A DNA stretch of 64,000 nucleotides from Cyanophora paradoxa CCMP329 (taxonomy: Eukaryota > Plantae > Glaucophyta), in contig QPMI01000531.1 in NCBI GenBank assembly GCA_004431415.1, positions 62,001-126,000 on the forward strand, read 5' to 3'. Positions 10,198 through 64,000 of the stretch are shown here, piece by piece. The first letter of the stretch is position 1; each line of letters starts with the position of its first letter. The notes below the pieces were generated by a model, which was not told the DNA's origin, searched no databases, and saw only the letters and a program-made list of their open reading frames with translations. A program made the translations under genes and the position numbers.

Positions 10198-12870
10198 ATG
10201 CATCCGCTGAGGATTTCCCGCCCAATGTGCCGCCGGGTGCGCAGATCGATGCGCGGGCCCCGCGCGCGCCGATCATCGACCGCTGATCGGCGGGTGGCGC
10301 GCAGACTCGCCGGCGCCCCGGCGGTTCGAGGCCGACAGGAAGACTCCGAGGACGTTCCGAGAGGCGCGGGGCCCGGCGCAGTTCGAGCGGAGGCCGCGCA
10401 CCGAGCGGAGGCCGCAGACGCAGCGGGGCCCGGAGCAGATCGCGGCGACCCGGGCCCGCGGCACGGTGAGCCTTGCACGGCGCCCCAGCACCCGCTCCGG
10501 GCGCCACGCTGACGGCGACGCGGGCGGGGGCAGCGCCTGGTGGAGGCCGGGGCCCGGGGCGTGGAGGCGCTCGTGGCGGCGGTGCGGGCGGAGGTCGTCG
10601 ACTACGACCCGCTCAACGCCGCGACGGCCGCGCACCAGCTCGCCCGCCTCGCCGGGACCGCGCCGGGCGAGAGCGGGGCGGCGGGGGCGGCGGCGCTGGA
10701 GGCGGCGGGGCTGCTGGAGGATGCGTTCGGGGTGGAGGGCGGGCCGGCGTGCTGGCGCCGCTTCTCCCCGAAGAACCTCGCCCTGTTCGCCCACGGGCTC
10801 GCCCGGCTCGGCGCGGGGCGCGAGGCGACGCTGCGGCGCGTCGGCGAGCGGCTGGGGGCCTTCGCGGGGGACCTCAACCCCCGCGACGCCGCCCAGCTCG
10901 CCTACGCCGCCGCCCGCTGGGGGTCCGCCTCGCCCCTCCGCCCCACCCTCCCCCTCCTCGCCTCCGCCTGCGCCGCCGCCGTCGCCCGCGGCGAGTGCGG
11001 CGAGCACGAGATCGCCAACGTGCGCCCCGTCCCGCGCAGGAGCGCCCCGCGCCCGTACCCCTGACCTTCTCCCCCCCTCTCTCCGCTCAGATCCTGTGGT
11101 CGTTCGCGACGCTGGGGTACAGGGACGAGGCGCTCCTGGAGGCGGCGGTGGAGCGGGCGGGCCCGCAGCTGGCGGGGTACAGCCCGCGGGCGCTCTCCAA
11201 CGTGGCATGGTCCGCTGCCGTGCTGGGCTCATCGGGGCCCTCGGCGCCCTTCGGGCCGGCCTCGCCGGCGGCGCTCGGCGAGCCCTCGGCGGCCGCCCGC
11301 GCCGCCGCGGGGCCCTCCTGGACGCGGCGGCGGGGCGGCGCGGGCGCGGGCGGCGGAGCTGGGCGCGGCGTGCACGCACTCGCTCGCGCTGCTCGCCTCG
11401 TCCCTCGCCTACGCCGCCTCGGCCGACTCGCCGGCCCTCCTCGCCCGCCGGCCGCCCGCCGCGCCGCCGAGGCCGCCGCCGCCCTCGTCGCCGCCGCCCG
11501 GCCCCGCGCCGCCTCCCTCACCCCGCGCTCCGCCGCCTCGCTCCTCTTCGCCGAGGCGCGCGGGCCGGCGCCCGACCCCGCACCGTCAACACCATCGCCG
11601 CCGGCGCGATGGGCGCCTCGCCGCGGGCGGCGCCGGCGGAGCGGGCGGCGGCGGCGCGCGCGTGGGCGGCGGACCCGCTGGCGGCGGCGACGGCGCTGCA
11701 GGCGCTCCACGCCGTCCGCTACGACGCGCCGGAGGCCCTCGCCTGCCTCGGCGCCGCCATCGCCGCCGGCGCGGCGCGCCTCCCGCCCCGCGCCCTCTCC
11801 ACCGCCGCCGTCGCCCTCGCCTGCTTCCGCGCCGGCTGCGGTCCCGCGGGGCCGCTCGAGGCGCTCGCGGCGGCGATGGCGGCGCAGGCGGCGGGGGCGG
11901 GGACGCAGGAGCGGCTCGGGGCGGCCTACGCGGCGGCCGTCGCGGGGCGGGACGACCTCCTCGCGCTCCTGCTGCGCGCCTTCGCGGCGGCCCCGCGGCC
12001 CGGCGAGGCGGCGCCGCAGTGGCCCGACGGCGCCTCGCAGGCCGCCCTCGTCGCCGCCGCCGTCGCCCTCGAGGCGCCCCGCCTCGCCCCGCTCCTCCCC
12101 CCGACTGGGCCACGCCGCCCGCGCCTGGGGCGAGCACTGCGCCGCCGGCCCCGCCGCCGCGCCCTCGACGCTGCACGCGGAGGTGGCGCGGGCGGTGGAG
12201 GCGGCGCTGGCGTCGGGCTCGGCGCCGCGGCTGGCGGCCGGCGGGCGCCGGAGCACGAGGCGGCCATCGACGGCGTCGTCGTCGACATCGCGTGGCCGCC
12301 CTCCGCGTCGCCCTCGAGGTCCGCCCGCCGCGGCCCCGCCCCGCCCGCCCGCCCGCCCGCCGACCCCGCCGACCCGCCGACCCCGCCGAAGGTGGACGGC
12401 CCCTCCCACTTCCTCCTCGTGACGGGCCGCTACGACGGGCCGACGGCCGCGAAGAGCCGGCTGCTGGCGCGGCGCGGCTGGCGGACGCTGCGCGTCTCGT
12501 ACCGCGCGTGGGGCCGCCTCCGCTCGGGCCCGAGCGCCTCGCGTACGTCGCCGCCCGACTCGCCTCCCTCGAGCTCGAGGGCGGCGAGGCCGCCCGGGGG
12601 CCCCGCCCCGCCCCCGACGCCGACGCCGAGGAGGGGCCCGCACCCGTCCCCGCCCGGCCCCGCTCCCCTCCCGCCCCGAGGCCGCACCCTCCCCACCCGC
12701 GGCCGCGCCGCCAGCCCGACCCCGCCCTTTCCCGGCCCGCGCCGCCTCCCCCGCTTCGTCGGCCCCGCGCCGCCGCGGCCGCCCGCCCCGCGCCGCCTCT
12801 GTCGCTTGAGGCGTGGTCCTTGTTAGATTTAGGTAGGCCTTCCGGTCACGTCAGAGGTAGCGATTTATAG
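10198..12870 (+). CDS. Helical-repeat (FAST/OPR-like) protein with C-terminal RAP domain; several apparent frameshifts
   Basis: Repeats FSPKNLALFAHGLARLG, LNPRDAAQLAYA, YSPRALSNVAWS; RAP motifs VVVDIAWP...VALE|VDGPSHF...KSRLLARRGWRTLRVSY. Ends approximate. Confidence 0.75.
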
Positions 12871-12923
12871 ATACTTTCGATTGCTCGAGGTTCTCTTTCA
12901 ACAATCGCAAGAAGCTCTAGATC

Positions 12924-15900
12924 TCAAGCAGCTTCTTCGACGCTTGCAGACACGGACCACAAGCTAGCGGACAACCAGCCCTCAAGGATGCTCTTTGCAA
13001 CGGACTCCAAACCCGCAAGGGCTGCTGGCACACTGACGTGAATTACGCACCTTCGCGGCTTAGCCTTCAATTTGCGAGTTCCGAGAGCCTGCGCATGCAT
13101 GCCAAATCGCTTAAATTTGGCAGAGAACCGCTGATGCAGAAGACTGCAGACCTGGAGGGGGAACAGATCCGGCAGAGTCTCGATCGTTGAATCTATTCCC
13201 AGAATAGTGAGACGTGGCATCTTGGGGCTCGACAGCAGCGCCTGTACTTCCCCGTCCCTGATTCGCCTCAGCCCGATCGCAGTCTTTTTTTTATCTAGAG
13301 ATCTAGAGATCTCGACTCACGTGAAAGGCCGCTGAAGGTTGAGGTCAAATTTGTGGAGAGCGTCGACTGGAGATGCTTGCGAAATGAAGCGCTTGATTGT
13401 TTCCGCACTTGGATTTCGGGACTTGCCTGCGCAACGAATGGCACGAAACATTAGATAAAAGAGCCACTGACTTGCCGCGCGCGTCAGTTGGGTCCGGGGA
13501 AGGGAATTTTAACTCGGCGAATCCAAAGATCTAGATCTAGATCGATATCTAGACTCTGAGCTCGAGAGAGCAGGCCTATAGCTAGCGCATATATAGCTAT
13601 AGGAGCTTCCGAAGTTCAAGGCTTGAGGAAGAAACTTGAAATGCAGAACTCATGATCAAGCTTAAGCTTCAGAAGGCGGTGGCCGGGCGAGCCGGCTCCG
13701 ATCCGCGGCCGAGGCTGGCCATGCATATGCCAGGCTATAGCTAGCGCTCACGATCGAGCTAGCGCTCGAGGCTCAGCGGCTAGGCCAGAGGTAGGGTGCG
13801 GGCCCCGGGGGCGGGGGATGGCTCGCAAATCGAACCGGTACCTTGTGTGCTCCTGCGCATGCGCTTGCCCCGCGGCCGTCGCGCGCGTGAGGCGCGACGG
13901 CGCCGGCCGCGGGCCCGGGTGCAGGGGTGCGCGTGTGCGCGTGTGTGCGGCGCGCGGGGAGGCGCGCGGCTTGGCTAGAGGCTGGCCTCCGCGATCTAGA
14001 TCTGCATGCGCGGGCAAACCTGGGCGCGAACGCAGGGACGCTGCTCGAGCTCATGATCATGATCACGCTCCGCTCATGCATATGATCAGAAAGCGGTCGC
14101 GCGGGGCCTGTTGCACTGCGCATGCGGCAATTGGCACGAACGGCCGTGGGCGCAAGCTAGCGCGCATGCGACCGGCTGGTGGCCGGCTTGCGCATATGCA
14201 TGTCGGGGTGCGCGCGCGCGGTTGGAGCGGCTGGGGCGTGCGCGTGATCTCGAGAGGCGTGATCGTGTCGAGCCGAGATCGACAACTCGGCGAGCTGATC
14301 GATGATCATGAAGCTTAAGAGAAGCGATGGAGCGCGGCGGGTACGACATGGCCAGACGGTCATACCAGGTACGTTTAAGGGTACGCCAAAAGACTTTTGC
14401 AGGGTCTTTCGCACTCTCCAATGTGATTGGCTAGCACGCGCGGCGTCCTCCTGCGCTACCGCGAGCGCGCCCGGCCTCGCGCTTGCAGTAAGGAATGTCG
14501 GGCATGATGCAAGCAATGACCTCGAACTGGTTTGGCGCGTATATCTGCTCCCTGTGCGGTGATTCCGGTACCCCAAAAAAGGAGCACGAGGCGCCGGAAC
14601 CCGCGCCGACACGACGCCTACACACTGTGGGAGCCAGTGTCTGCGCTGGTGAGACCTCTAGCGTGCCTCGCGCCCGCCCGATGGCTCAAATCCGCCGAAA
14701 GGCCACTGCTTGTCGCCGCAAAGGCCTTTGCCGCAATCACAGGACCCCCTGTCCTGAAATGAGATGCCACGTCTTCTGGACGGTCAGTTAACCGGCCAAG
14801 CTCCAGGCCCGGCACGATTTCGCACCAGTTGTCTAACCGACACGACGATGCGCAGAGAAGTGCGCCACACGATGGCGGAACAGGAGTTCAACCCGTTCGC
14901 AACACCAGCCCAGCCTGGCGCTGCTGAGGAAGGCGCTGGCCAGGAAGGCGGAGACGCCGATGGCGATGAGCTCATGGACGGCCTCGGCGAGATCGACGAT
15001 GCTGGCAACGGCGCAGATCTCGGCGAGCAAGGCGCTGGTGCAGAAGCCGGAGAGCAGGGCGCTGCGGTGAACGCCGGCGAAGATGAAGACTATGCCGGCG
15101 ACGCCGACGACGATGACGCGGCAGGGCCGAGCGGCCCAGTTGTGCGAGCGCCGACGGGCGGAGAGCGACGGGACAAGTCGCAACCGATAAACAAGACCTT
15201 CCGCGTCCCGAAGTTCATGGTTGCGGTCGTCTTCGAACCGCTCGACCTTGTCCCGACCAAGTACGCGGGGACCCAACTCTGCCTTAACGGCGACGGGCTA
15301 GTCCCACTGAATGAACGCAAACATATGGTTCAAACGGTCCGTCATGACTCGGCCGAGCGAGCTCCCGCCCACGCTGAGAATGTGCGACAGGTGATCTCAG
15401 AACGGAACATCGCCCACGGCGGAGTTCGCACCAACTTCCCTCAAAGGGGTGCGTCGCAGTACTGGCAACGCCGGACGTGATGACAGATGTCACATATGCG
15501 AAAGCTCGCAAGGTGCGCCCGATCTGACGATACGCCCGTCCCCAAGTCTCCTCGCTCACCCCTCGCAGTGGACCAAGGACACGGCTGCGAAGCTGCGCGT
15601 CGCTACATGCCTCGCGGTGAAATTGCCGAACAAGACGAATCGCCGAGACGAAGTAACGATCTACCAGATCGATTCGCCAGTAGTGGTAAGCCGCCGAGCG
15701 AGCCGGAACGACTTCCCCATAACTGTGCATGCGCAGAGAGCCCCGAAACCATGGATGCTGCTCGATGACAAGGAGCACGCGCCAATGATCCTCATCGACG
15801 GCGCCCCGGTGTTCTCTACCAAGGGCGGCCTCCAGCCGGACGGCAACTTCTCCGCGAACACGCGCCGCGACGTGCTTCATCTCTTCCGCACACTGGCGCG

Positions 15901-18900
15901 CCAGGTGGAGCACGACGCGACGAAGTCGCTCAAGACCGCGACGCGGGAGAAACTCACGCCGCTGCAAGACGGCACGGTGCGATGATCTAACCGGCCACGC
16001 GGCGAACGCTAACCAACCGCTGGTACGCAGCTGGAGGCAGAATGCCTCGGCTTTCGAGTCCTCGGATGGGCCGGCACGCCAGCGGCGGTACAACAGAACA
16101 TGATCATGCGCGAGCCTCCGCGCATCGCCCTCACCACCGGCAACGTTCACCTGGCCAACAAGTACGTTGCCGCGCACGGCGACCGGGGCTGACACCTGAG
16201 GCTGACAGCAACCCGCGCTTGCAGACTGATCGAACTCAGCAAGGCGAACCTGCTGCGGTTCGAGTCGTGTCCCATCACGGTGAACCTCGCAACCGAGGCC
16301 CCCGAGCTCCACACCTGCGGCACCTTTGTTCTGGCTCTGCACGCGGCGACAGCGCAACTCCCGGTGAGCCGAGATTCCTTTTTCCCCTCCCGTCCCCGCG
16401 GACGCAGAAGGCTGAAGGCTTGGCAGCTGCCCACCATCCTCAAGGAAGTGGCGCGCAACCCGGCCGAAGTGACGCTGGTCTACCACCAATGCAGCTACAG
16501 TCACGGCCAGTCACCACCCGACGGCGACGTGCTGCACCTCCTTATCAAGAAGGAGAAGGTGGCTGCCTGGGAGGCGGCGATGAAGCCCGCCGCGCCTGGC
16601 GTGCGCTACTCGTGCGGCGAGACGCTTCACCTCTCAATGCAGGTGGCGGACCACACAGCTTCGCTCTGGCGTGTCCGGCCGCCGGCGAGCCTCACCCCGA
16701 AGGCGCTCCAGAACTTCAGCCCCGCTGGCTGCCGCCGTCACCGCCTCCAAGCCTACTTCGAACACAAGAGCTCGAAGTGCCCCGGCACGGACTGGAAGCC
16801 GCGGACGAGCGGCGAGGCGGACGCTGAGGCGTCAGCAGCGTCGTTGGCTGGCCAGCAGCCGGGCTCAGCAGCCAGCAGCCGCGGCCGCGGACGCGGCGGC
16901 GCAGCAGCGAACGCTGGGCGCGGGCGCGGGAGCAAGCGCGACCAGGAAGAGGCGGACCCCCGCGAGACTTTCTTCCCCAAGGAGGCCAAGCGCCCTCGGG
17001 TGCTGCAGCCATTTGTACCTCCCACGGCCCCGCCAGCGCCAGCCTGGGGCGGCAGCAGCGCAACGCCGACCGACCTCTTTGCCGTCGTGGCCGGCGTCCC
17101 CGCAGCATCCTGGCCGCCGCTGCAGCTGGGCATAAACTCGGCAGCAGTGACGTCAGCGGCGCCGGCGCTGAGCAGCAACGATACCCGTGACCGCAACTCG
17201 CGGGGCCGCGGGACGCGCGGACGCGGCGGACCCCACGGCGGGCGCGGAGGACACACTCCGGCGGAGGTGGCGGCGCCTCAGCCCCCGATCCCCATTCTCT
17301 CCCCCCAGCTCCCGGGGGGGTTCCCGGGATTTATGATGCAGCAGACGCCGCAGCAGGTGGCACAGCAGATGCAGATGAACCAGGCGCAGGCGATGTATTT
17401 TGGCGCCATGCTTGCAGCCCAGCAGCCAGGCCGCAGTTAAAGACTAGAGAGGCCTCGAGGATTGTATGTGCTAGTGTGAAGGACACTGGCAATTTGTGCG
17501 TACAGGCAGGGGAGGGAGGGCCCATGCCGGGGGGGGAGGGGGGGTAGACTTGGGAGGGGGCGGACAGCTGGAGTCGGGGAGCAACGGAGCGGGAGTGCCC
17601 AGCCAAAGTGGAGGCCTAATCCTCTCTGAACCCCCGGCCCTAGCGGGGCCGGAGGCACCAAGCTCCTCACCTCTCCACTCAGGCAGTACCACCCCACCAG
17701 CTTTACCACCCTCGCTCCATCCCCACCTATTAGCATAGGACTAGCCCAGGGGTAGAGTTAGATGGATAGCTAGTTATATATATAGGTAGATGTTTAGGCA
17801 CAGCACACGAGAGTCCTCATATTCTCTTCCTGGATATAGTTTTCAGTGAGGGTATGGTCGACGTTACGACTTCAGTGTTGTACGGTTGTGCTAATGCAAA
17901 TTTGGGCCTATCTGCTCCCTGTGCGTCGCTGGACCCGTTTTTGTCCCGGGTGTTGGTGCCTGTTCCTGGATCACCCTTTGGTCGGACGGGACCGGGAGAC
18001 ACGGTTTCGGGGTCCCCTTGGGATGGGCTTTCAGGATATACCGCGATGCCCGGGTTTTGAGGAGGTCGGGGAAACAGGATTTGGGGTAGGGTTGGGCCCG
18101 AGGGACAGGGACAGGGGAAGTGTTTTTCCCTTCCCCAATGATGGAAGAACGCCCAATTGCGATGCTTAAGGTTCTAAGTTGGGTGTGTGCATTGCACCAT
18201 GAATGGCAATTGCAAGCTGCAGTGTAGGAGGAGTCGAAGACGTCAACGTGCTCATGGCGTCAGCAAGGCCGTTCAGGAATCCGTCAGCTCCATCGGCCGC
18301 AGCAGTACTAGTGTAGACGTCGACTTCGAGGCACCGCAAGCGCTTCGCTCCGCTCAGCGCCGCCGCGTCCTCGCGCGCAATCGGGGACACACCCTCGTCA
18401 ATCTACGCAGATCAAAGATGTGCCACATCATGAGCGCTATAGCTAGCGTCGACGCGGCAAATCTAAACGCACTTTCAAACGAGCAATTTTCTCGAGTAGT
18501 GGCATGCACCCGAATCCTCGAATATCCGCACTTGCAACAAGAGCATACCTTGCGAAACGATTCTGTAAATTCAGAAAGCAAAAGTCCACGGGAGATCATA
18601 GGATCGTGAGCAAATTTTAAAGATCTCGCACCGCTTTGGAGAAAAAATCCGAATAGACCGGCCAGCTGGGCCCGCCCCAAGTGCTGTGGGTCCGCCACGG
18701 ATATCAAGATCCAACGTTCTATCGTCCCCTGCACAGAAAAACAAGCAACGCAAAACGCGTATCATCAGAAAAGTAAAAAAACAAGCAATGCAAAACAAGG
18801 ACTTGCAGTCAAATTCGTGACTAGAGGGGCCTAGCAGCGTCACTTCTTCAAGGGAAGCGAGCGGTGCCAAGGCTGCGACAGCTGTCCCATCCTTCGGCCG

Positions 18901-19815
18901 GAAAAGCACAGAGCGAAGGAGCGGGCAACATTGCACTATGGCTGCTGCCGCAGGGCCGCTCATGGCGCTTGGGTAGTTTGAAGTCGGAAAGAGGGAAAAG
19001 GATTGCAGACAGCGAAATGGGGACATGGAAAGGAGAAGCTCCGCGGGGGACGGTGCCCACTCCTCAAAGTTCGCTTCGTATACATCGATGGCAAGCTCCG
19101 TGAGGGGCTGGGCTGCAGCTGCTTCATGATCATGGGCAGGTGGGTCTCTAGGGGCAATCGCACGGAGGGAGGCCAGTGTGCCGAAAACGAGGCCGCACAG
19201 AGCAGAGCTGGGGAGCTCGAGGTCTTCTTCCTCATCCTCATCATACTCCGGCACTTCCAATGTGACGCGAAGGCTGCGGATCCCAGCAGGAGCGCGGACG
19301 CTGCCGCTGGACGTTGACGCCGACGCCGACGTCGAGGCAAGACGTCGGCGTTGCTGTGCATTGCAGCTGGTCGTGGCGCCAGCTATAGTGCTCGAGCTCG
19401 CAATCGAGCGCGATGCAGCTGTTCTCGTGCACTGGACAAGGAATGCTGCAGATGCTGCAAGGTGGTCGAACGCTTGGCGATACATTCCAGGTCCTTGAGA
19501 GGGAACTTCGCATTTGAGCCGTAGCTCGACGGAGGGCTGGGTCGCCAGTTGCAGCTGCCCGGCCTGGATGCGACGGGCTAATGCTTGCAAGCGTTTCGGC
19601 TCCTCGACTGCGACCTCCACTCGCTCCCAAAGCGCAGTGTCGAACGCGCGACGCCACTGCTTGCAGATGGCCCGCAGCTGAACCGCCTTGAGCAGACCGA
19701 CGAAGGAGAGCACGCGCGACACCACCACGTCCGGTAGCATCGCGAACAAGTTCGCCGGAGGCGGCGCATCGCCCTTGCGTGCCCGCTTCGCGCGAGCTTT
19801 GGGCATTCTGCGCAT
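12924..19815 (-). CDS. F-box/LRR-like protein, probably disrupted; 3' exons (12924-13426) separated by a putative 4.8-kb intron
   Basis: F-box LFAMLPDVVVSRVLSFV...LRAICKQWR; LRR-like CPLLRSV, LASLEEVTL. Phase-1 donor at 18197 fits a phase-1 acceptor at 13427 (IAIHG|KSRNPSAETIKRFISQA). One apparent frameshift in an A/T run near 18645. Confidence 0.65.
14542..17925 (+). mobile_element. Putative ORF1-only element bounded by 17-bp direct repeats
   Basis: tatctgctccctgtgcg at 14542-14558 and 17909-17925; lower GC than host genes; G-rich tract after the stop (~17510-17565); no poly(A) tail seen. Confidence 0.45.
14872..17440 (+). CDS. LINE ORF1/Gag-like nucleic-acid-binding protein (acidic N-terminus, two RRM-like segments, variant zinc knuckle, RGG and Q/M-rich tail), up to 7 introns
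   Basis: GT-AG introns 15337-15390, 15449-15486, 15513-15568, 15686-15736, 15977-16030, 16162-16224, 16364-16426 give one open frame (three are in-frame and optional); CRRHRLQAYFEHKSSKCP followed by RGRGRGG. Family call is by motif resemblance only. Confidence 0.6.
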
Positions 19816-20403
19816 TTCACGTCAGTGGAGAGCGCTCACAGGCTGGTGAACAAAGCGGGCGCCTAGCTTACGTGTGGTAGCGCTCTCCTGAGGCCGGGCG
19901 CGAGACGGAAAGGCGAGAGATGGGTAAGTAGGTTGGCTGCGGGCTGACTGCGGATAGGTGCCACTGCACTGCTGCACTTGGGCAGCTGCTGGCAGCACTG
20001 GCGAGGGGTACGCAGCGTCGGGGCAAAGCGTGGAATCGTCGCTCGGGTTCGTTTAAAGTGCTGCGAAACGACCGCACCAAATCCAGCTAGCACAGCGAAC
20101 GAGAATTGCGGCCAGCGGGGGAGCGGGAGCTCGTGCGAAGCAAGGCGGGTCGCCCGAGGCGAAGAAGTCGCCGCGTGCGAGGTAAGCGCACAGTCAGGGA
20201 TCGTCTCGAGCTCGGCGCGTTAGGCTTCGCGCGCCGGCGCTTCGGGGTGCTTTCCAGCCGTTTAGCGCACGCCGTCTGAACGACCCGGCGCTTCATTCGC
20301 TAGCTGCGGCATCTCTGAGCGCTCCAGCGCCAATCCCCGTCGCCGCCACCGGTCGCGTGGTCCCGCGGCCCGAGCTAACACCCAGCAGCGCAGAAGAGCG
20401 GGG

Positions 20404-50000: not shown

Positions 50001-52876
50001 CGGCGGGCCCGACACCATCCAGGAGGAGCCGAAGGGGGCGAAGGGCAAGGACAAGGGGGTGGAGATCAAGGGCAAGAGGGCGGTCCTCATCTCCGGCCCG
50101 CCCGGTGCGGCGGGGTCCAGCGCGCGCCCCCCGGGCGGCGGACGACGAGGGCCGGGGGCAGGGATCGGGAAGACGACGGCGGCGGCGCTGGTGTGCCGGC
50201 TGCGCGGCTTCGACGTCGTCGAGCTGAACGCCTCGGACGCGCGCTCCAAGGGCGCCCTCAAGGCGCGTCTACCCCGCCCGCCCCAGCCCCGGCTCGCTCA
50301 TGCGGGGCGGCAGGACCTGGTGCAGCACGCGCTGCGGAACCGGTCGATCAAGGGGTACGCGACGGAGGACCTGGACTCGGGGCGGAGCGTCCAGGCGCGC
50401 GAGCGCCTCGCGCTCATCTTCGACGAGTGCGACGGCATGACCGGCTCCGACCGCGGCGGCATCCAGGCCCGCCGCCCCGCCGTCCCCGCCCCTCCTGCCT
50501 CCGCCGACGCGCGCGGGCCGGCCGGCAGGAGCTCATCCTGTACATTAAGAAGGCCAAGGTCCCCATCATCTGCATCTGCAACGACCGCTCCTCAAAGAAG
50601 GCGCGCCCCGCGGCCCCGCCCCGCCCCGCCCCCGCCGCCTCGCGCCGAGCGCCTCGCAGGTCAAGAGCCTCGCGAACCACTGCGCCGACCTGCGGTTCCA
50701 GAGGTGCGGCGCTGCGGTGGCGCGCCTGCGGGGCCCCGTGCCCTCCCCTCCCCCGGGTGAGGTGGCGGGGCGCGGGGCAGGCCGCCGAAGGACGCGATCG
50801 CGCGGCGGGTGCAGGAGATCGCGCGCCGCGAGGGCCTCTCCATCGACATGAACGCCGCCACCTGCGTCCGCCCCGCCCCCGCCCGCCTCCCCCGCCGCGC
50901 TGTCCCGTTTGTCGACCCGGCCGCCCGCAGATTGCGGAAACCTGCAACAACGACATCCGGCAGGCGCGCCGCCGCCCCGCCGCCCGGCCCTCCCGGCCCT
51001 CCCGGCAGCTGATTTCTCGCGCAGGTTCTCAACAACCTGCAGATGATGCGGCGGAACCGGACGCAGGTGACGTACATGCAGGCCAAGGCGCAGTCGGCGG
51101 CGAACGCCAAGGTGGGGCCGTGCCCCGCCCCCTCCCCGCCCCGCCGCCCCCGCGGGGCGCCGCTGAGGGGGCCGCGGGGCAGGACATCCCCATCTCGCCC
51201 TTCGACGTCGCCCGCGACCTCCTCGACGTGCCCCGCCCCGCGCAGCGCTGCGCTGCGCGCCCCGCCCCCGCCCCGACGCCGCCCCGCCCCGGCCCCGCCG
51301 CAGGCAAACAAGTCGCAGAAGGTCAAGATGGCGGACATGATGTGCGGGCGCCCGGCGCGGGCCCCCGGCGCGCGGCTCTGCTGACGCGGGGGCGGGGGCA
51401 GCAACGCGCACTTCAACGACGCGGACTTCGTGCCGATGCTGATCCAGGAGAACTACGTGAACGTGCAGCGCCCGTGGGCCGCCGCCGGCAAGGGCGACGA
51501 GGTCGCCATGGAGTTCGTCGCCCGCGCCGCCGACTCCTGCTCGTCCGCCCCCCCGCCCCGCCCCCGCCCCTCCCTGCCGCCCCGAGCCGAGGCGGCGGGG
51601 GCAGGGAGGGGGACGTGATGGGGCGGGCGATCCGGCAGCGGCAGCAGTGGCAGCTCTCGCAGGCGCACGCCGTCCTCTCCACCGTCCGCCCCGCCGTCTT
51701 CGCCAGGCGCCCCCGCCCCGCCCCGCCCCGCCCCGCCCCGCGCGGCCTTTCTCGAGCCGCCGCGCAGGGGCGGCCTGCAGCAGACGGCCTGGGGCTCGGG
51801 CATCAAGTTCTCCGACTGGTGCGCGGCCCCCCGCCCCGCCTCGGCGCGGGGCGCGGCGCGGGCCGACGATGCGGGGCCAGGTTCGGGAAGAACTCTTCGG
51901 AGAAGCGGATGCGGCGGCTGGTGAAGGAGATGTCGCTGCACTCGGCGGGGAGGGTGCACGCGGGGCGGGAGGCGCTGCGGCTGGACTGCGTGCCGGTGCT
52001 GCGGGACCGGCTGGTGAAGCCGCTGGCGCGGGAGGGCGGCGAGGCGGTCCCCGGCGTCGTCCGCGACCTCCTCGACCTCGGCCTCACCAAGGCGCGCCGC
52101 CCCGCTCCCGGCGCCCAGCTCCCAGCTCCCAGCGGCCGCCTCACGCGCACGCACGGGGCCCCGCAGGACGACCTCGACGCCGTCATCGAGCTCAACACCG
52201 TCCGCCCCGGCCCCGCCCCGCCCCGGCCCGCCCCTCGCCGGCGTGCGAGCGGGGCGGCGGGTCGCGCAGCTGGGGCCGAGGAAGGAGGACAAGGAGGACC
52301 CGCTGTGGAAGAAGGTCCCGGCGCCCGCCAAGGCCGCCCTCACCCGCGAGTACAACAAGGTCCGCGCGCCGGCGGCGGGGCCGGGCCCTCGGGGGCGATC
52401 AAGCGAGCGGGCGTGCGGGCGGGGCGGGGGGCAGGCGGCATCGTTCGTGCCGCAGCGGGCGAAGGTGACGAGGACGCTTGAGCGGCGGGCGGTGCTGGCC
52501 GAGGACGAGGAGGCCGACCCCGAGGTCGTCGACGTCGACTCCGACGGCGCGCCCGCGCCCGCGCCCGCCCCGCCCCGCCCCGCCCCGCCCCGCCCCCGCG
52601 AGCTCCGGCGCAGAGGAGGGGAGCGACGGGGGCGCCCAGTCGGGGAGCGAGGAGGGCGACGGGGCCCCCGACCTCTCCAAGGCGCCCCCGGCCCCTGCGC
52701 ATCGGCGCTGTCGCCCGCGCGAGCGCTCACGGGGGGCGGGGCGGGCGCAGGTGAAGGGCGTCCGCGTAAAGGCCGGCGGCGCCGCCAAGACCTCGCCCGG
52801 CAAGGGCGCGGCCAAGGGCGCCAAGGGCGGCGCCAAGGGCGGCGCCTCCTCCGCCGGCAAGAAGGGGAAGAAGTAG
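47033..52876 (+). CDS. RFC1: Replication factor C large subunit, 36 introns by manual splicing
   Basis: DIRSFFG N-terminus; BRCT (GAPNCLAGKAFLFTG...VVGADPGPSK...IDEDGFLDLIR); WVDKYKP; GPPGIGKTT; ELNASDAR; DECDGMTGSDRGG; PIICICND; IQENY; KAALTREYNK. Confidence 0.96.
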
Positions 52877-53639
52877 GGGGCAGCGTCTCGTTAGTGTCGT
52901 TCTCGCGAAAGTTACTCACGTTAGTCCTACGGTACCCGGTCATTGTGCATCGATATCGTGAATTCAAAGGCATATCCAGTCCACGGGGGCTCGGGGTGGA
53001 AGGGGCCACTGGGCCAGGCAATTGAACGCGCGCTAGCGCTAGACCATCGAACTCTAGGAACTTCGGAATTCATGATCAATGCGAGTCAGAGAGCCCCCAG
53101 TGCCTCGCAGCTAGCGCTGCCTTGGAATTCGAACTGGTGCCCGTTCACGGTTGACCGAGTTCGATCAACAAATTCAGAGATGCATATGCGTGCACGTGAA
53201 TCAAATGCGCTGAATTGTCCACACTGTGACACCATTTTGAACAACACTGTGACAACCGCGTACACTGCCATTGAATTCGACTGCATTAAGTTGAAGGAAA
53301 AACAAAAAGCTCGCTACAATCGCTGACCAAGTTAAAAATCAGATTCAAATGCGAAGGGCCCGAAATTCTGCATGATACAATTTCGTCACACTAAAGCTGC
53401 TGTGCATGCACACTCACAATTGCAAGTGCAAATTACTTAGCTATAGCTAAAAATAATCATACATAGTCACACTGTGCCAGGAAATACTACATTTGCAAGA
53501 TTAAGACAAATGCTGCAGGAAAATACAAAACGTTCAACGTTGATCATGACTGCATGCGCGACTATAGCTAAGTGAATGTTAAACTCAAGGGCTCGCTGCC
53601 GGAATCTCGCGGCATGCCACGATGGAAGCTCGAGGCCCA

Positions 53640-61417: not shown

Positions 61418-64000
61418 ATGGCAGACCGCCACGACAGACCCGGGGCGAAGAAAGCAAGGGAGGCGGCGGGCCCTTACTATGACTCCAGGGGCCAGCAAGC
61501 GACGACTTCGGCCCAGCAAGCTTCTGCAGCTGAGACCATGGAACTTAACCAGCGTACGCGCGTCATCGAGGATGTTTTTCTGCTGCTGACTCCGTGCAGG
61601 CCCTTCGGTTGACGGTTTGATTGAGATCAGTGCGCGCCCCCGCCGGCCGCACGCGAGATCGCAAGCGGAACTGACGGATCCCGGAACTGCGCGCAGAGGC
61701 GGACATACTCTTCAAGGGAGAGGAGCTTGGGAAAGGGTGCGTCTGGGAGGGCAGCGGGTGGCGGCCCGGGGCCGACTTTGACTGGGGGCCGCAGGGCGTG
61801 CGCGACGGTCTACAAGGGGAAGTATATGCTCGACGACGTGGCCATCAAGGAGTTCAGCGACTACTACGACCCCAGCTTCGCTTCCGAGGCGCGCGCGCCC
61901 CGTCCTCGGCGCCGCGCGCCGCCCCCGCGCCCACCCCTGACCGCGCGCGCAGTTCAGAATCCAGCTTATGACGACGCACAGCCACGTGGTAAAAATCATC
62001 GGAGCGCAGACGAAGCAGCCGCCCCTTCGCATCGTCATGGTCCGCAGCGCCGGCCGGCCCGCCCGCCCGCCGCCGGCCCGGGCGTCGAGCGCGGGGGCGC
62101 AGGAGCTGATGGGCGGCAATCTGCGCTCGGTCGTGCTGGAAGACCTTGGGGTTGAGCTGAGCCTGGCCGACCGTCTCCGCCTCATGCGCCAGGCCCGCCG
62201 GCCGGCCCCCGCGCGCTCGCCGCCCACCCGACGCGGCCTTGACGCCGCCCCGGGGCAGGTCTGCCTGGGCCTCTGCGCCCTGCACAGCAAGAGCCCTCAC
62301 ATCGTGCACGGCGACCTCAAGGCCCGCCCGCCCCGCCCGCGCCGCCGCTCGCCGGGGTCTCACGGGGGCGGGGCGCATCGCGCAGAGCCTGAACGTGCTG
62401 GTGAAGAAGACGGGGGGCCCGGAGCGCTTCGAGTGCAAGCTCTCGGACTTCGGCCTGGCGAAGATCATGGAGGCGACGAAGACCTCCATGCTCGCCCGGC
62501 AGCCCCAGCAGGCCGCCCCCACCGACTCCGCCCCGCACGGCGGCGCCGGCTCCTTCCCCTGGATGGGTGCGCCCCGCCCCGCCCCGCCCCGCCCGCCCCG
62601 CCCCGGCTGGACGTGACGCGGCGGGGCGGCGGGGCAGCGCCGGAGGTGATGGGCGGGCAGCAGGCGACGCGGAGCAGCGACGTGTACAGCTTCGCGACCG
62701 TCTGCTGGGAGATCCTCACGCGGCGGGCGCCCCACGCCGGCCTCACCCCTCAAAACGTGCCGTCGCTCCCGGGCGTGCGCCGGCCCCAGCGGGCGCTGAG
62801 CGGCGCGCAGATCGTGTCGCTGATCGGGCGGCGGGGATCGGAGGCGGACGCGATGCTCGACGATGGTCGTGATCGCGAGAGGTTCCTGCCCCACGCGCTC
62901 CCGCCCGACTGCCCGGAGCCCCTCCGCAGGGTCCGCCGGCCCCTCGCCCCGCTGCGCCGCCCTGGGCCTCTGACGGGGCCGGCAGCTGCTGGTGCGCTGC
63001 TGGAGCGTCGACCGGGCGGCGCGGCCGACGGCGCTCGAGGCCCTCGACGAGCTCACCCGCCTCGAGGCCGAGGCGACGCAGCACGCCAGTGCGCCCGCCC
63101 CCCTCCTCCCTACCCCCAGTGCCTCCACCGCCTCACCGCCGCCGGCCGCAGCGGCGCTCGTCGCGGCGCACGTCGACGCGTACATGGGGGAGCACGGCGG
63201 CAGCGAGCAGAACCGCGACGCCCGCCTCGAACTCCGCCTCTGCAAGGTCCCCCGCCCCCTCCCCCGCCCCGCCCCGCCCCGCCCCGCCCCGCCCCGCCCC
63301 GCCCTGCCCGCCCTTTGGCGAGCGGGGGGCGCAGCTGGTGAAAGAGTACGAGCGGTCGCCGCGCGCCGCGGAGCTCCTCTCCGCCTTTGCCGCCGAAGTG
63401 CAGAGCCGGCGCGCCCCGCCCCGCGCCGCCCCGCGCCGCCCCGCGCCGCCCAGAGCGAACGGGGGCGCAGATTCTCCCCCGACGCGATCCGAGTGGACGA
63501 GAAGCTGGGGCGCGAGATGCGCGTCGTCGGGATGCTGCCCGAGATATGCAAGCTGTGGGCGCGCTTCTTGGCGACCCAGAGCTTCGTGGGGGCCGACGGG
63601 CGCGCCTACTGGAGGCGGGCGGCGCTGGCGGACATCACGAGGGCCGAGTTCAACTTCGTCTCGCTCGGCGAACCCCAGTTCCGCGAGATCCTCGCCATCG
63701 GTGCCCGCCGCCCCCGCCCCCGCCAGGCCCGCGCGGGGCCGACTCGGGGCGTGCAGCGCTGCCGGAGCGGCGGGAGCACGTGGCGCAGGAGACGTACACG
63801 GAGGACGAGGTGCGCGAGTTCTGCTACTGGCTCCACCCCGTCGCCATCACCCACCGCAGCGTGCGCGCCGCCCCCCGCCCCCCGCCGCCCGCCCCCCGCC
63901 CTCATCCCAGCCGGGGCGCAGCTTGAGAGGCTCTTCGTGGGCGGCGCCCGCGTCGGCGACGCCTTCCTCACCCTCGAGGTGACCCCCGCCCCGGGGGCGG
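61418..64000 (+). CDS. Tyrosine-kinase-like Ser/Thr protein kinase with unknown C-terminal domain; 3' end beyond window
   Basis: LGKGACATVYKG, VAIK, IVMELM, HGDLKSLNVL, DFGLAK, GSFPWMAPE, SDVYSFATVCWE, CW...RPTA after splicing. Confidence 0.93.

Follow-up and report, generated by a model that had tools for sequence, protein, structure and literature searches.

A gene with six introns, bracketed by a 17-bp direct repeat and nested in an F-box/LRR gene intron of Cyanophora paradoxa, is a candidate mobile cassette

Contig QPMI01000531.1 of the glaucophyte Cyanophora paradoxa CCMP329 (assembly GCA_004431415.1) was analyzed over 64,000 nucleotides (nt) of its forward strand (positions 62,001 to 126,000; hereafter the window, whose coordinates are used throughout). 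An initial annotation had described positions 14542–17925 as an intron-containing unit lying between 17-bp direct repeats, lacking a reverse transcriptase (RT) and resembling the first open reading frame (ORF1) of a long interspersed element (LINE). On the sequence evidence presented below we favor, at about even probability, the reading that positions 14559–17908 constitute a self-contained gene cassette with introns of its own, whose recent insertion, in antisense, into an intron of an F-box/leucine-rich repeat (LRR) gene duplicated 17 bp of the target.

The unit is nested in a gene on the opposite strand. A minus-strand ORF at 19815–18574 matched the Pfam F-box-like model (24.6 bits versus a cut-off of 24.3), and two paralogs of this ORF (P0011 and P0012) are 39–40% identical to it. 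Both paralogs aligned by their first two thirds to 19740–18172 and by their last part to 13439–12933. As the F-box pieces flanking the unit are colinear with the paralogs, we conclude that the unit lies antisense inside an intron of this host gene, which is the main new result. Where the window reads ..LAIAIHG/KSRNPSAETIKRF.. across the junction, P0012 reads ..LCIDIQG/SSCSPDPETLTHF... The intron donor is CATG/GTGCAA at 18198/18197 and the acceptor is TTGCGCAG/GCAAG at 13427/13426. The repeat, the unit and the surrounding host gene are arranged as follows.

12924–13426, minus strand: 3′ exons and stop codon of the host F-box/LRR gene
13427–18197, minus strand: host intron of 4,771 nt containing the whole unit in antisense, placed by colinear tblastn alignments of P0011 and P0012
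14542–14558, plus strand: left copy of the exact 17-bp direct repeat, a candidate target-site duplication
14559–17908, plus strand: unit between the repeats, 3,350 bp, consisting of a 313-nt 5′ leader, a seven-exon gene and a 468-nt 3′ trailer
17909–17925, plus strand: right copy of the exact 17-bp direct repeat
18198–19815, minus strand: 5′ exons of the host F-box/LRR gene, recognized by the Pfam F-box-like match and the homologs P0011 and P0012

Two neighboring introns of the host gene, measured from gaps in the tblastn alignments, are about 67 and 77 nt long, and other introns visible in these alignments look similarly short; the intron holding the unit is roughly 60–70 times longer than the two that were measured. 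The host gene looks intact: its splice sites are canonical, and it is colinear with its paralogs. Inserts of this kind are tolerated best when they lie antisense within an intron.

The window contains two exact copies of the 17-mer (TATCTGCTCCCTGTGCG), both on the same strand, and no further occurrence was found there at up to two mismatches. The repeat reported earlier on each side of the unit is therefore present as described, and within the window it is not a common dispersed motif. Its two copies are identical at 17 of 17 positions and have sharp edges, as the adjoining flanks share only 18 of 60 and 9 of 60 positions. It is also the only direct repeat of at least 10 nt between the intron parts 13427–14600 and 17441–18197. 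A 17-nt direct pair appeared in the 4,771-nt host intron in 0.3% of 2,000 composition-preserving shuffles, the intron bounds having been defined independently of the 17-mer. Anywhere in the 64-kb window, a 17-nt direct pair within 6 kb was obtained in 38% of block shuffles, mostly in very GC-rich parts, and hence it is the host-intron context that makes the observed pair meaningful. A search of metagenome contigs with the 17-mer returned 54 single matches on unrelated contigs (GC 36–64%), none resembling the unit; these are the chance matches that a collection this large would be expected to give. The 17-mer is probably a target-site duplication.

The principal alternative is that the gene belongs to an ordinary, lineage-specific family of RNA-binding host genes with a nucleolin-like layout that spread by segmental duplication, the copy in the window simply being nested in a long intron and the 17-mer being a coincidence or a small regulatory motif. 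We regard this explanation as possible but doubtful. Exact bracketing of the gene by a pair that arises so rarely in shuffled introns argues against it, as does the length of the host intron relative to its two measured neighbors. The F-box ORF search returned only the 39–40% identical paralogs, on other contigs, and no near-identical flanking copy was found. This is a weak indication that the flank was not co-duplicated with the unit. In favor of a host family, the neighborhood consists of ordinary host genes, for example the F-box gene and, further along the window, long dynein-like ORFs (the latter identified by eye), and no transposable element protein or terminal structure was found.

The contents and ends of the unit bear on how it could have moved. 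Pfam searches of the exons and of antisense ORFs of the unit identified no RT or endonuclease, in agreement with the initial annotation, and no RT or transposase was found in the 64-kb window; the RT partner whose search had been recommended is thus absent from the window. Neither end of the unit has a poly(A) tract, again as reported earlier, and the unit terminates in ...AAATTTGGGCC without an A-run. Long terminal direct or inverted repeats of the kind that bound long terminal repeat or terminal inverted repeat elements were not found at the ends of the unit or of the intron. An 11-nt inverted repeat (GGGGAAGGGAA / TTCCCTTCCCC) lies at 13496–13506 and 18126–18136, about 60–80 nt inside the ends of the host intron; a match of this length is at chance level (about 0.5 expected) and is probably meaningless.

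These observations can be set against the proposal that the unit is mobile at the DNA level, whether as the cargo of an unclassified DNA element, as a non-autonomous derivative of such an element, or as a sequence patched into a staggered double-strand break. We judge this proposal improbable. It is consistent with the missing poly(A) and with the retention of all six introns in every subfamily examined (see below), whereas the absence of terminal inverted repeats, for which the 11-nt repeat at chance level is the sole candidate, and of a transposase in the window speak against it. The length of the duplication is a further difficulty, as we know of no eukaryotic cut-and-paste superfamily whose target duplications are as long as 17 bp.

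The nested gene corresponds to database model tig00021017_g17198 (P0008). Its exons were delimited by mapping the intact paralogs P0010 and P0004 onto the window exon by exon. In searches with the gene model the exons were used one by one and never joined, and the spliced product was represented by database proteins (P0010 and others). The resulting model contains seven exons separated by six GT-AG introns.

14872–15336, plus strand: exon 1, coding for an acidic, disordered N-terminal region and the beginning of RRM-like domain 1; P0010 residues 1–155, with one difference
15391–15512, plus strand: exon 2, broken by a 1-nt gap; 15391–15438 and 15441–15512 match P0010 residues 156–171 and 173–196 exactly
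15569–15685, plus strand: exon 3; P0010 residues 197–235, with no difference
15737–15976, plus strand: exon 4, start of RRM-like domain 2, with motifs DGAPVFS and PDGNFS; P0010 residues 236–315
16031–16161, plus strand: exon 5; P0010 residues 316–358
16225–16363, plus strand: exon 6; P0010 residues 360–405
16427–17440, plus strand: exon 7, encoding RRM-like domain 3, a CHHC knuckle, RG tracts and a Q-rich conserved C-terminus, and ending with the stop codon

The introns are 54, 56, 51, 54, 63 and 63 nt long, in order. Of the initial annotation's single spliced ORF, the two junctions read at first were correct: across 16161/16225 and 16363/16427 the proteins P0010, P0004 and P0008 read RIALTTGNVHLANKLIELSK and AATAQLPLPTILKEV without interruption, and P0001 aligned with a 21-residue gap exactly over 16364–16426, i.e. 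intron 6. The intron count was too small, as there are additional introns at 15337–15390, 15513–15568 and 15686–15736, next to that at 15977–16030. A model in which exon 1 spans 14872–15448 and is joined to 15569 was rejected because the reading frames are incompatible; the paralog proteins gave the right model. All introns except the 56-nt intron have lengths divisible by three. Intron 6 has no in-frame stop codon, such that a 386-amino-acid ORF reads straight through it. Short GT-AG introns with lengths like those of the two measured introns of the host gene are what an ordinary host gene family would have.

Exon 2 carries a lesion. Compared with the intact paralogs, codon 172 (Pro) has only two bases (15439–15440), one base being missing after 15440, and the exon is consequently read in frame 1 up to 15438 and in frame 0 from 15441. 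The change falls in the conserved KGC[VI] strand region of RRM-like domain 1, and the database model P0008 hops over it. The missing base may reflect a genuine frameshift, or else the long-read assembly contains a homopolymer error at this point. Carrying the frameshift, the copy in the window is probably dead.

The unit exists in at least four copies that are nearly identical. When a single exon was used to search 1.84 billion representative proteins, the search returned P0004 (741 amino acids, 99% identical), and only members of this family were found. The 90% cluster of P0004 contains four C. paradoxa proteins (P0004, P0008, P0009 and P0010) encoded on four contigs. These proteins, which we refer to as subfamily A and which include the window copy as P0008, are at least 97% identical; of about 742 residues, the window copy has 4 that differ from P0010 and 10 that differ from P0004. 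The gene is therefore not single-copy. Because the genome was reported to be haploid (712 contigs in a 99.9-Mb assembly; PMC6704402), the four copies represent separate loci rather than alleles. Two of the four are damaged, namely the window copy with its frameshift and P0009, whose model omits two segments and is out of frame at its end, and the other two (P0004 and P0010) have intact ORFs.

More distant relatives were also found in C. paradoxa. Subfamily B (P0001, P0002 and P0003, at three loci) is about 38–46% identical to subfamily A. P0001 (tig00020961) and P0002 (tig00000448) are 98% identical over the 131 residues that they share, and P0002 and P0003 are truncated. In P0003 (tig00000448_g885) an EF-hand-containing N-terminus is fused to a subfamily B fragment, which carries a 22-residue internal tandem duplication (YETLKYSVSIGDPAREGTLWR twice); this gene lies ten gene models from that of another truncated family member (g875). 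Subfamily C consists of P0005 (tig00021501), which is 36% identical to subfamily A and has no knuckle. The exon 4 motifs DGAPVFS and PDGNFS are conserved in P0002, P0005 and P0007.

The only relative found outside C. paradoxa is L001 (ENA ERZ23495802), a 654-bp metagenome contig of 67% GC that is presumably from another glaucophyte. It is 30–43% identical over the tblastn stretches and has short GT-AG introns at the positions of intron 1 (within one codon) and intron 2. Scans of metagenome contigs and viral contigs with the family profile identified nothing related. From the intron positions in L001, together with the P0001 gap over intron 6, we conclude that the introns are old and that the family diversified with its introns in place.

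The best explanation for this distribution is that the family is small, private to glaucophytes and was copied to new places more than once. The pattern of decay, which includes a frameshift, skipped segments and truncations, is typical of dispersed repeats. The presence of two diverged subfamilies, each with very recent copies and broken fragments, speaks against the spread of an ordinary host family. Yet two intron positions shared with a relative that is only 30–43% identical are consistent with such a family, as is a genome in which 34.7 of 99.9 Mb are duplicated features; repeats make up 29.4% of the same assembly and LINEs 2.47% (PMC6704402).

In the encoded protein an acidic tail precedes three non-canonical RRM-like domains, which are followed by a CHHC knuckle and finally by an RGG/Q-rich tail. 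AlphaFold models built from the shallow family alignment covered P0010 residues 96–560 (mean predicted local distance difference test score (pLDDT) 52) and residues 244–530 (mean pLDDT 59, predicted template modeling score 0.65). Both models contain three beta-alpha-beta-beta-alpha-beta domains. The best Foldseek matches were tandem-RRM proteins (HuR, E 6e-4, followed by DND1, IMP3 and HuD), and the top matches do not include L1 ORF1p. The nearest ESM Atlas models were likewise tandem-RRM proteins (template modeling score 0.32–0.43), and nucleolin was among the structural neighbors, nearly all of them RRMs. Such host proteins are the neighbors expected if the gene belongs to an ordinary RNA-binding family.

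A different result was obtained when the middle domain was compared with 48,161 chains using VIA-align. The top three matches were RRM entries of human L1 ORF1p, with Z 9.2 for 2w7a_B (rmsd 3.0, 98 of 99 residues aligned), 7.6 for 2yko_A and 7.6 for 2ldy, whereas other (host) RRMs scored at most 6.8, a gap of 2.4 Z units; the first AlphaFold model gave the same top match at Z 8.3. An RRM-like fold is thus supported by two aligners, subject to the quality of the predicted models. The specific likeness to ORF1p comes from one aligner and a model of modest confidence.

Sequence searches gave no corresponding match. Pfam identified no family in the exons, in whole proteins (P0010, P0005, P0002 and P0001) or in single domains, with no match to RRM_1 (PF00076) at E ≤10, and neither Transposase_22 (PF02994) nor zf-CCHC matched the family proteins. 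When PDB sequences were searched with the family profile, no match had an E value below 0.7, and ESM Atlas feature searches gave no usable match (scores ≤0.79). The lack of an RRM_1 match is unfavorable to the interpretation as an ordinary host RRM family.

Downstream of the third domain, the knuckle CRRHRLQAYFEHKSSKC (16730–16780) is a single C-x2-H-x7-H-x4-C (CHHC) motif that is conserved in subfamilies A and B and absent from P0005. About 220 residues of RGG/Q-rich tail come after it, with RG-rich tracts at 16880–16903 and 17201–17227. The knuckle and the RGG boxes noted in the initial annotation are thus present. Its assignment of an RRM-RRM-CCHC ORF1 architecture is upheld in part: RRM-like folds are predicted, the knuckle is CHHC rather than CCHC, and no sequence link to LINE ORF1 was found.

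In the scheme of Khazina and Weichenrieder (PMC4120745), type I ORF1p has one or more RRMs immediately upstream of one or more gag-like CCHC knuckles. The family resembles this type in having several non-canonical RRM-like domains that are missed by the Pfam RRM models, followed by a small motif resembling a zinc knuckle. It differs in that the knuckle is CHHC instead of C-x2-C-x4-H-x4-C, is single and is lacking in P0005, and in that no ORF2 follows. The RRM of human L1 ORF1p (2w7a, 2yko and 2ldy; type II, Transposase_22) is the best VIA-align match of the middle domain, modeled at pLDDT 59, but sequence identity is 8–10% and Transposase_22 does not match. No coiled coil or C-terminal domain (CTD) of the L1 type was recognized in the family models, which do not extend to the acidic low-complexity residues 1–95; after domain 2 there is no CTD-like match and a further RRM-like domain is found instead. 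Nucleolin/Nsr1 has the same order of an acidic tract, tandem RRM folds and an RGG (glycine/arginine-rich) tail. Its RRMs are canonical and match RRM_1, however, whereas the family has no Pfam match and has a CHHC knuckle and multiple copies, some of them decayed. The architecture appears to be of the RNA-binding or chaperone type, like that of LINE ORF1 proteins.

An ORF1-like protein could also be explained by domestication, i.e. an ORF1-derived host gene, now immobile, that was duplicated later. The mammalian precedent is L1TD1, a host gene domesticated from L1 ORF1 (PMC4161310). Like L1TD1, the gene in the window is a stand-alone ORF1-like gene without RT; unlike L1TD1, which is single-copy and syntenic, the family is dispersed, recently copied and partly degraded. 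The predicted structural match of the middle domain to the L1 ORF1p RRM, the host-like intron structure and the intact ORFs of P0004 and P0010 are compatible with domestication. We nevertheless consider it very improbable, as half of the near-identical copies are damaged, the exact 17-mer and the nesting point to ongoing dispersal rather than a fixed gene, and ORF1 ancestry is itself not demonstrated.

HAL1 (‘half-L1’) elements, described as non-autonomous mammalian retroposons (Bao and Jurka 2010, in PMC4161310), offer another comparison. The unit shares with them an ORF1-type gene without RT or endonuclease, multiple copies, and a direct repeat of the length of an L1-type target-site duplication. 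HAL1 is derived in sequence from L1, is intronless and moved as processed RNA, whereas the unit has six introns, no poly(A) and no sequence link to a LINE, and its movement is putative. With its introns and without a poly(A) tail, the unit also does not resemble a processed retrogene.

Returning to insertion of a cassette, which we favor, insertion of the 3.35-kb sequence would duplicate 17 bp of target, and the family would have dispersed repeatedly and decayed after insertion; we infer that the cassette moves as a unit. Within this explanation somewhat less than half of the weight goes to the likeliest route, in which the RT and endonuclease of a LINE, acting in trans, would copy the unspliced transcript. 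This target-primed type of route is favored because of the length of the duplication, the ORF1p-like protein and the absence of terminal repeats. Retention of the introns argues against ordinary retroposition of spliced RNA and, together with the lack of a tail and of a known RT partner, also against the LINE-type route. A DNA-level route, which is nearly as likely as the LINE route, explains the introns directly; there is no known enzyme or end structure for it here. ORF1 ancestry and LINE-driven movement are plausible hypotheses. The more specific proposal, that the family is a retroelement consisting of ORF1 only, lacking an RT and retaining its introns, that at least two of its lineages were active recently and that LINE machinery copies its unspliced RNA, is unlikely but deserves mention as a tentative extension.

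Several points weigh against the cassette interpretation. The unit has no poly(A), terminal repeat, RT or transposase. It has kept six introns, two of them at positions conserved in the 30–43% identical relative, for which duplication at the DNA level is a better fit than retroposition. The protein could not be connected with ORF1 or any Pfam family by sequence methods, and the fold models are of low to middling confidence (mean pLDDT 52 and 59). Since about one third of the assembly is duplicated (PMC6704402), multi-copy status is not rare in this genome. The copies other than that in the window were compared as proteins. The flank argument is weak because the F-box gene of the window itself has no model in the protein collection. 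Finally, subtraction of the unit and one repeat copy from the host intron leaves 1,404 nt, which is long for the F-box gene; the intron was thus already unusual or holds more than one insert.

The 3′ trailer contains a conspicuous element of predicted structure.

17504–17730, plus strand: G-rich tract and complementary C-rich tract in the 3′ trailer, a predicted long hairpin (folding, composition)

The G-rich 3′ tract mentioned in the initial annotation was confirmed, with a peak of 65% G at 17504–17563 and a C-rich partner at about 17640–17730. Folding of the trailer (17441–17908) gave a minimum free energy of −194.7 kcal/mol (z −2.95), and none of 100 shuffled sequences was as stable. An Rfam search of 12800–20000 gave no match.

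The surroundings of the unit are distinctive in composition. The window is very GC-rich overall (58–83% per 2 kb), and 12800–20300 forms a low-GC island of 58–68% per 2 kb between flanks of 74–81%. The island encloses the F-box gene together with the long intron and the cassette nested in it. In the part of the host intron preceding the left repeat, a block of about 820 nt (13500–14320) is packed with 6-bp palindromes (AGATCT, TCTAGA, GCTAGC, GCATGC, CATATG, TGATCA and AAGCTT), and 13427–14541 contains 101 such palindromes compared with 19.9 ± 4.1 in shuffled sequences. The F-box exons and a low-GC spot at 52800–53400 are also enriched in palindromes, and the inserted unit is not. The block was considered as an insertion boundary and rejected: it ends about 220 nt before the left 17-mer and is separate from the unit. 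The protein collection returned no model for the F-box gene of the window; the 4.8-kb intron holding another gene may perhaps have defeated the gene predictor.

Whatever its mobility, the unit defines an unannotated, glaucophyte-restricted family of RRM-like proteins in which three non-canonical domains of this type accompany a conserved CHHC knuckle; the family is not recognized by the profile libraries searched. If the unit is merely a duplicated host gene, the finding is an ordinary one. If it is mobile, it is a compact and well-delimited case, with one gene, sharp ends and a readable host intron, of dispersal of an intron-bearing gene, and could show how such dispersal proceeds in a genome that has one third of its DNA duplicated, most of it unclassified, and whether LINE-type machinery copies unspliced RNA. 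Should mobilization by a LINE prove true, the family would be a HAL1-like parasite of LINEs outside mammals that keeps its spliceosomal introns through retrotransposition.

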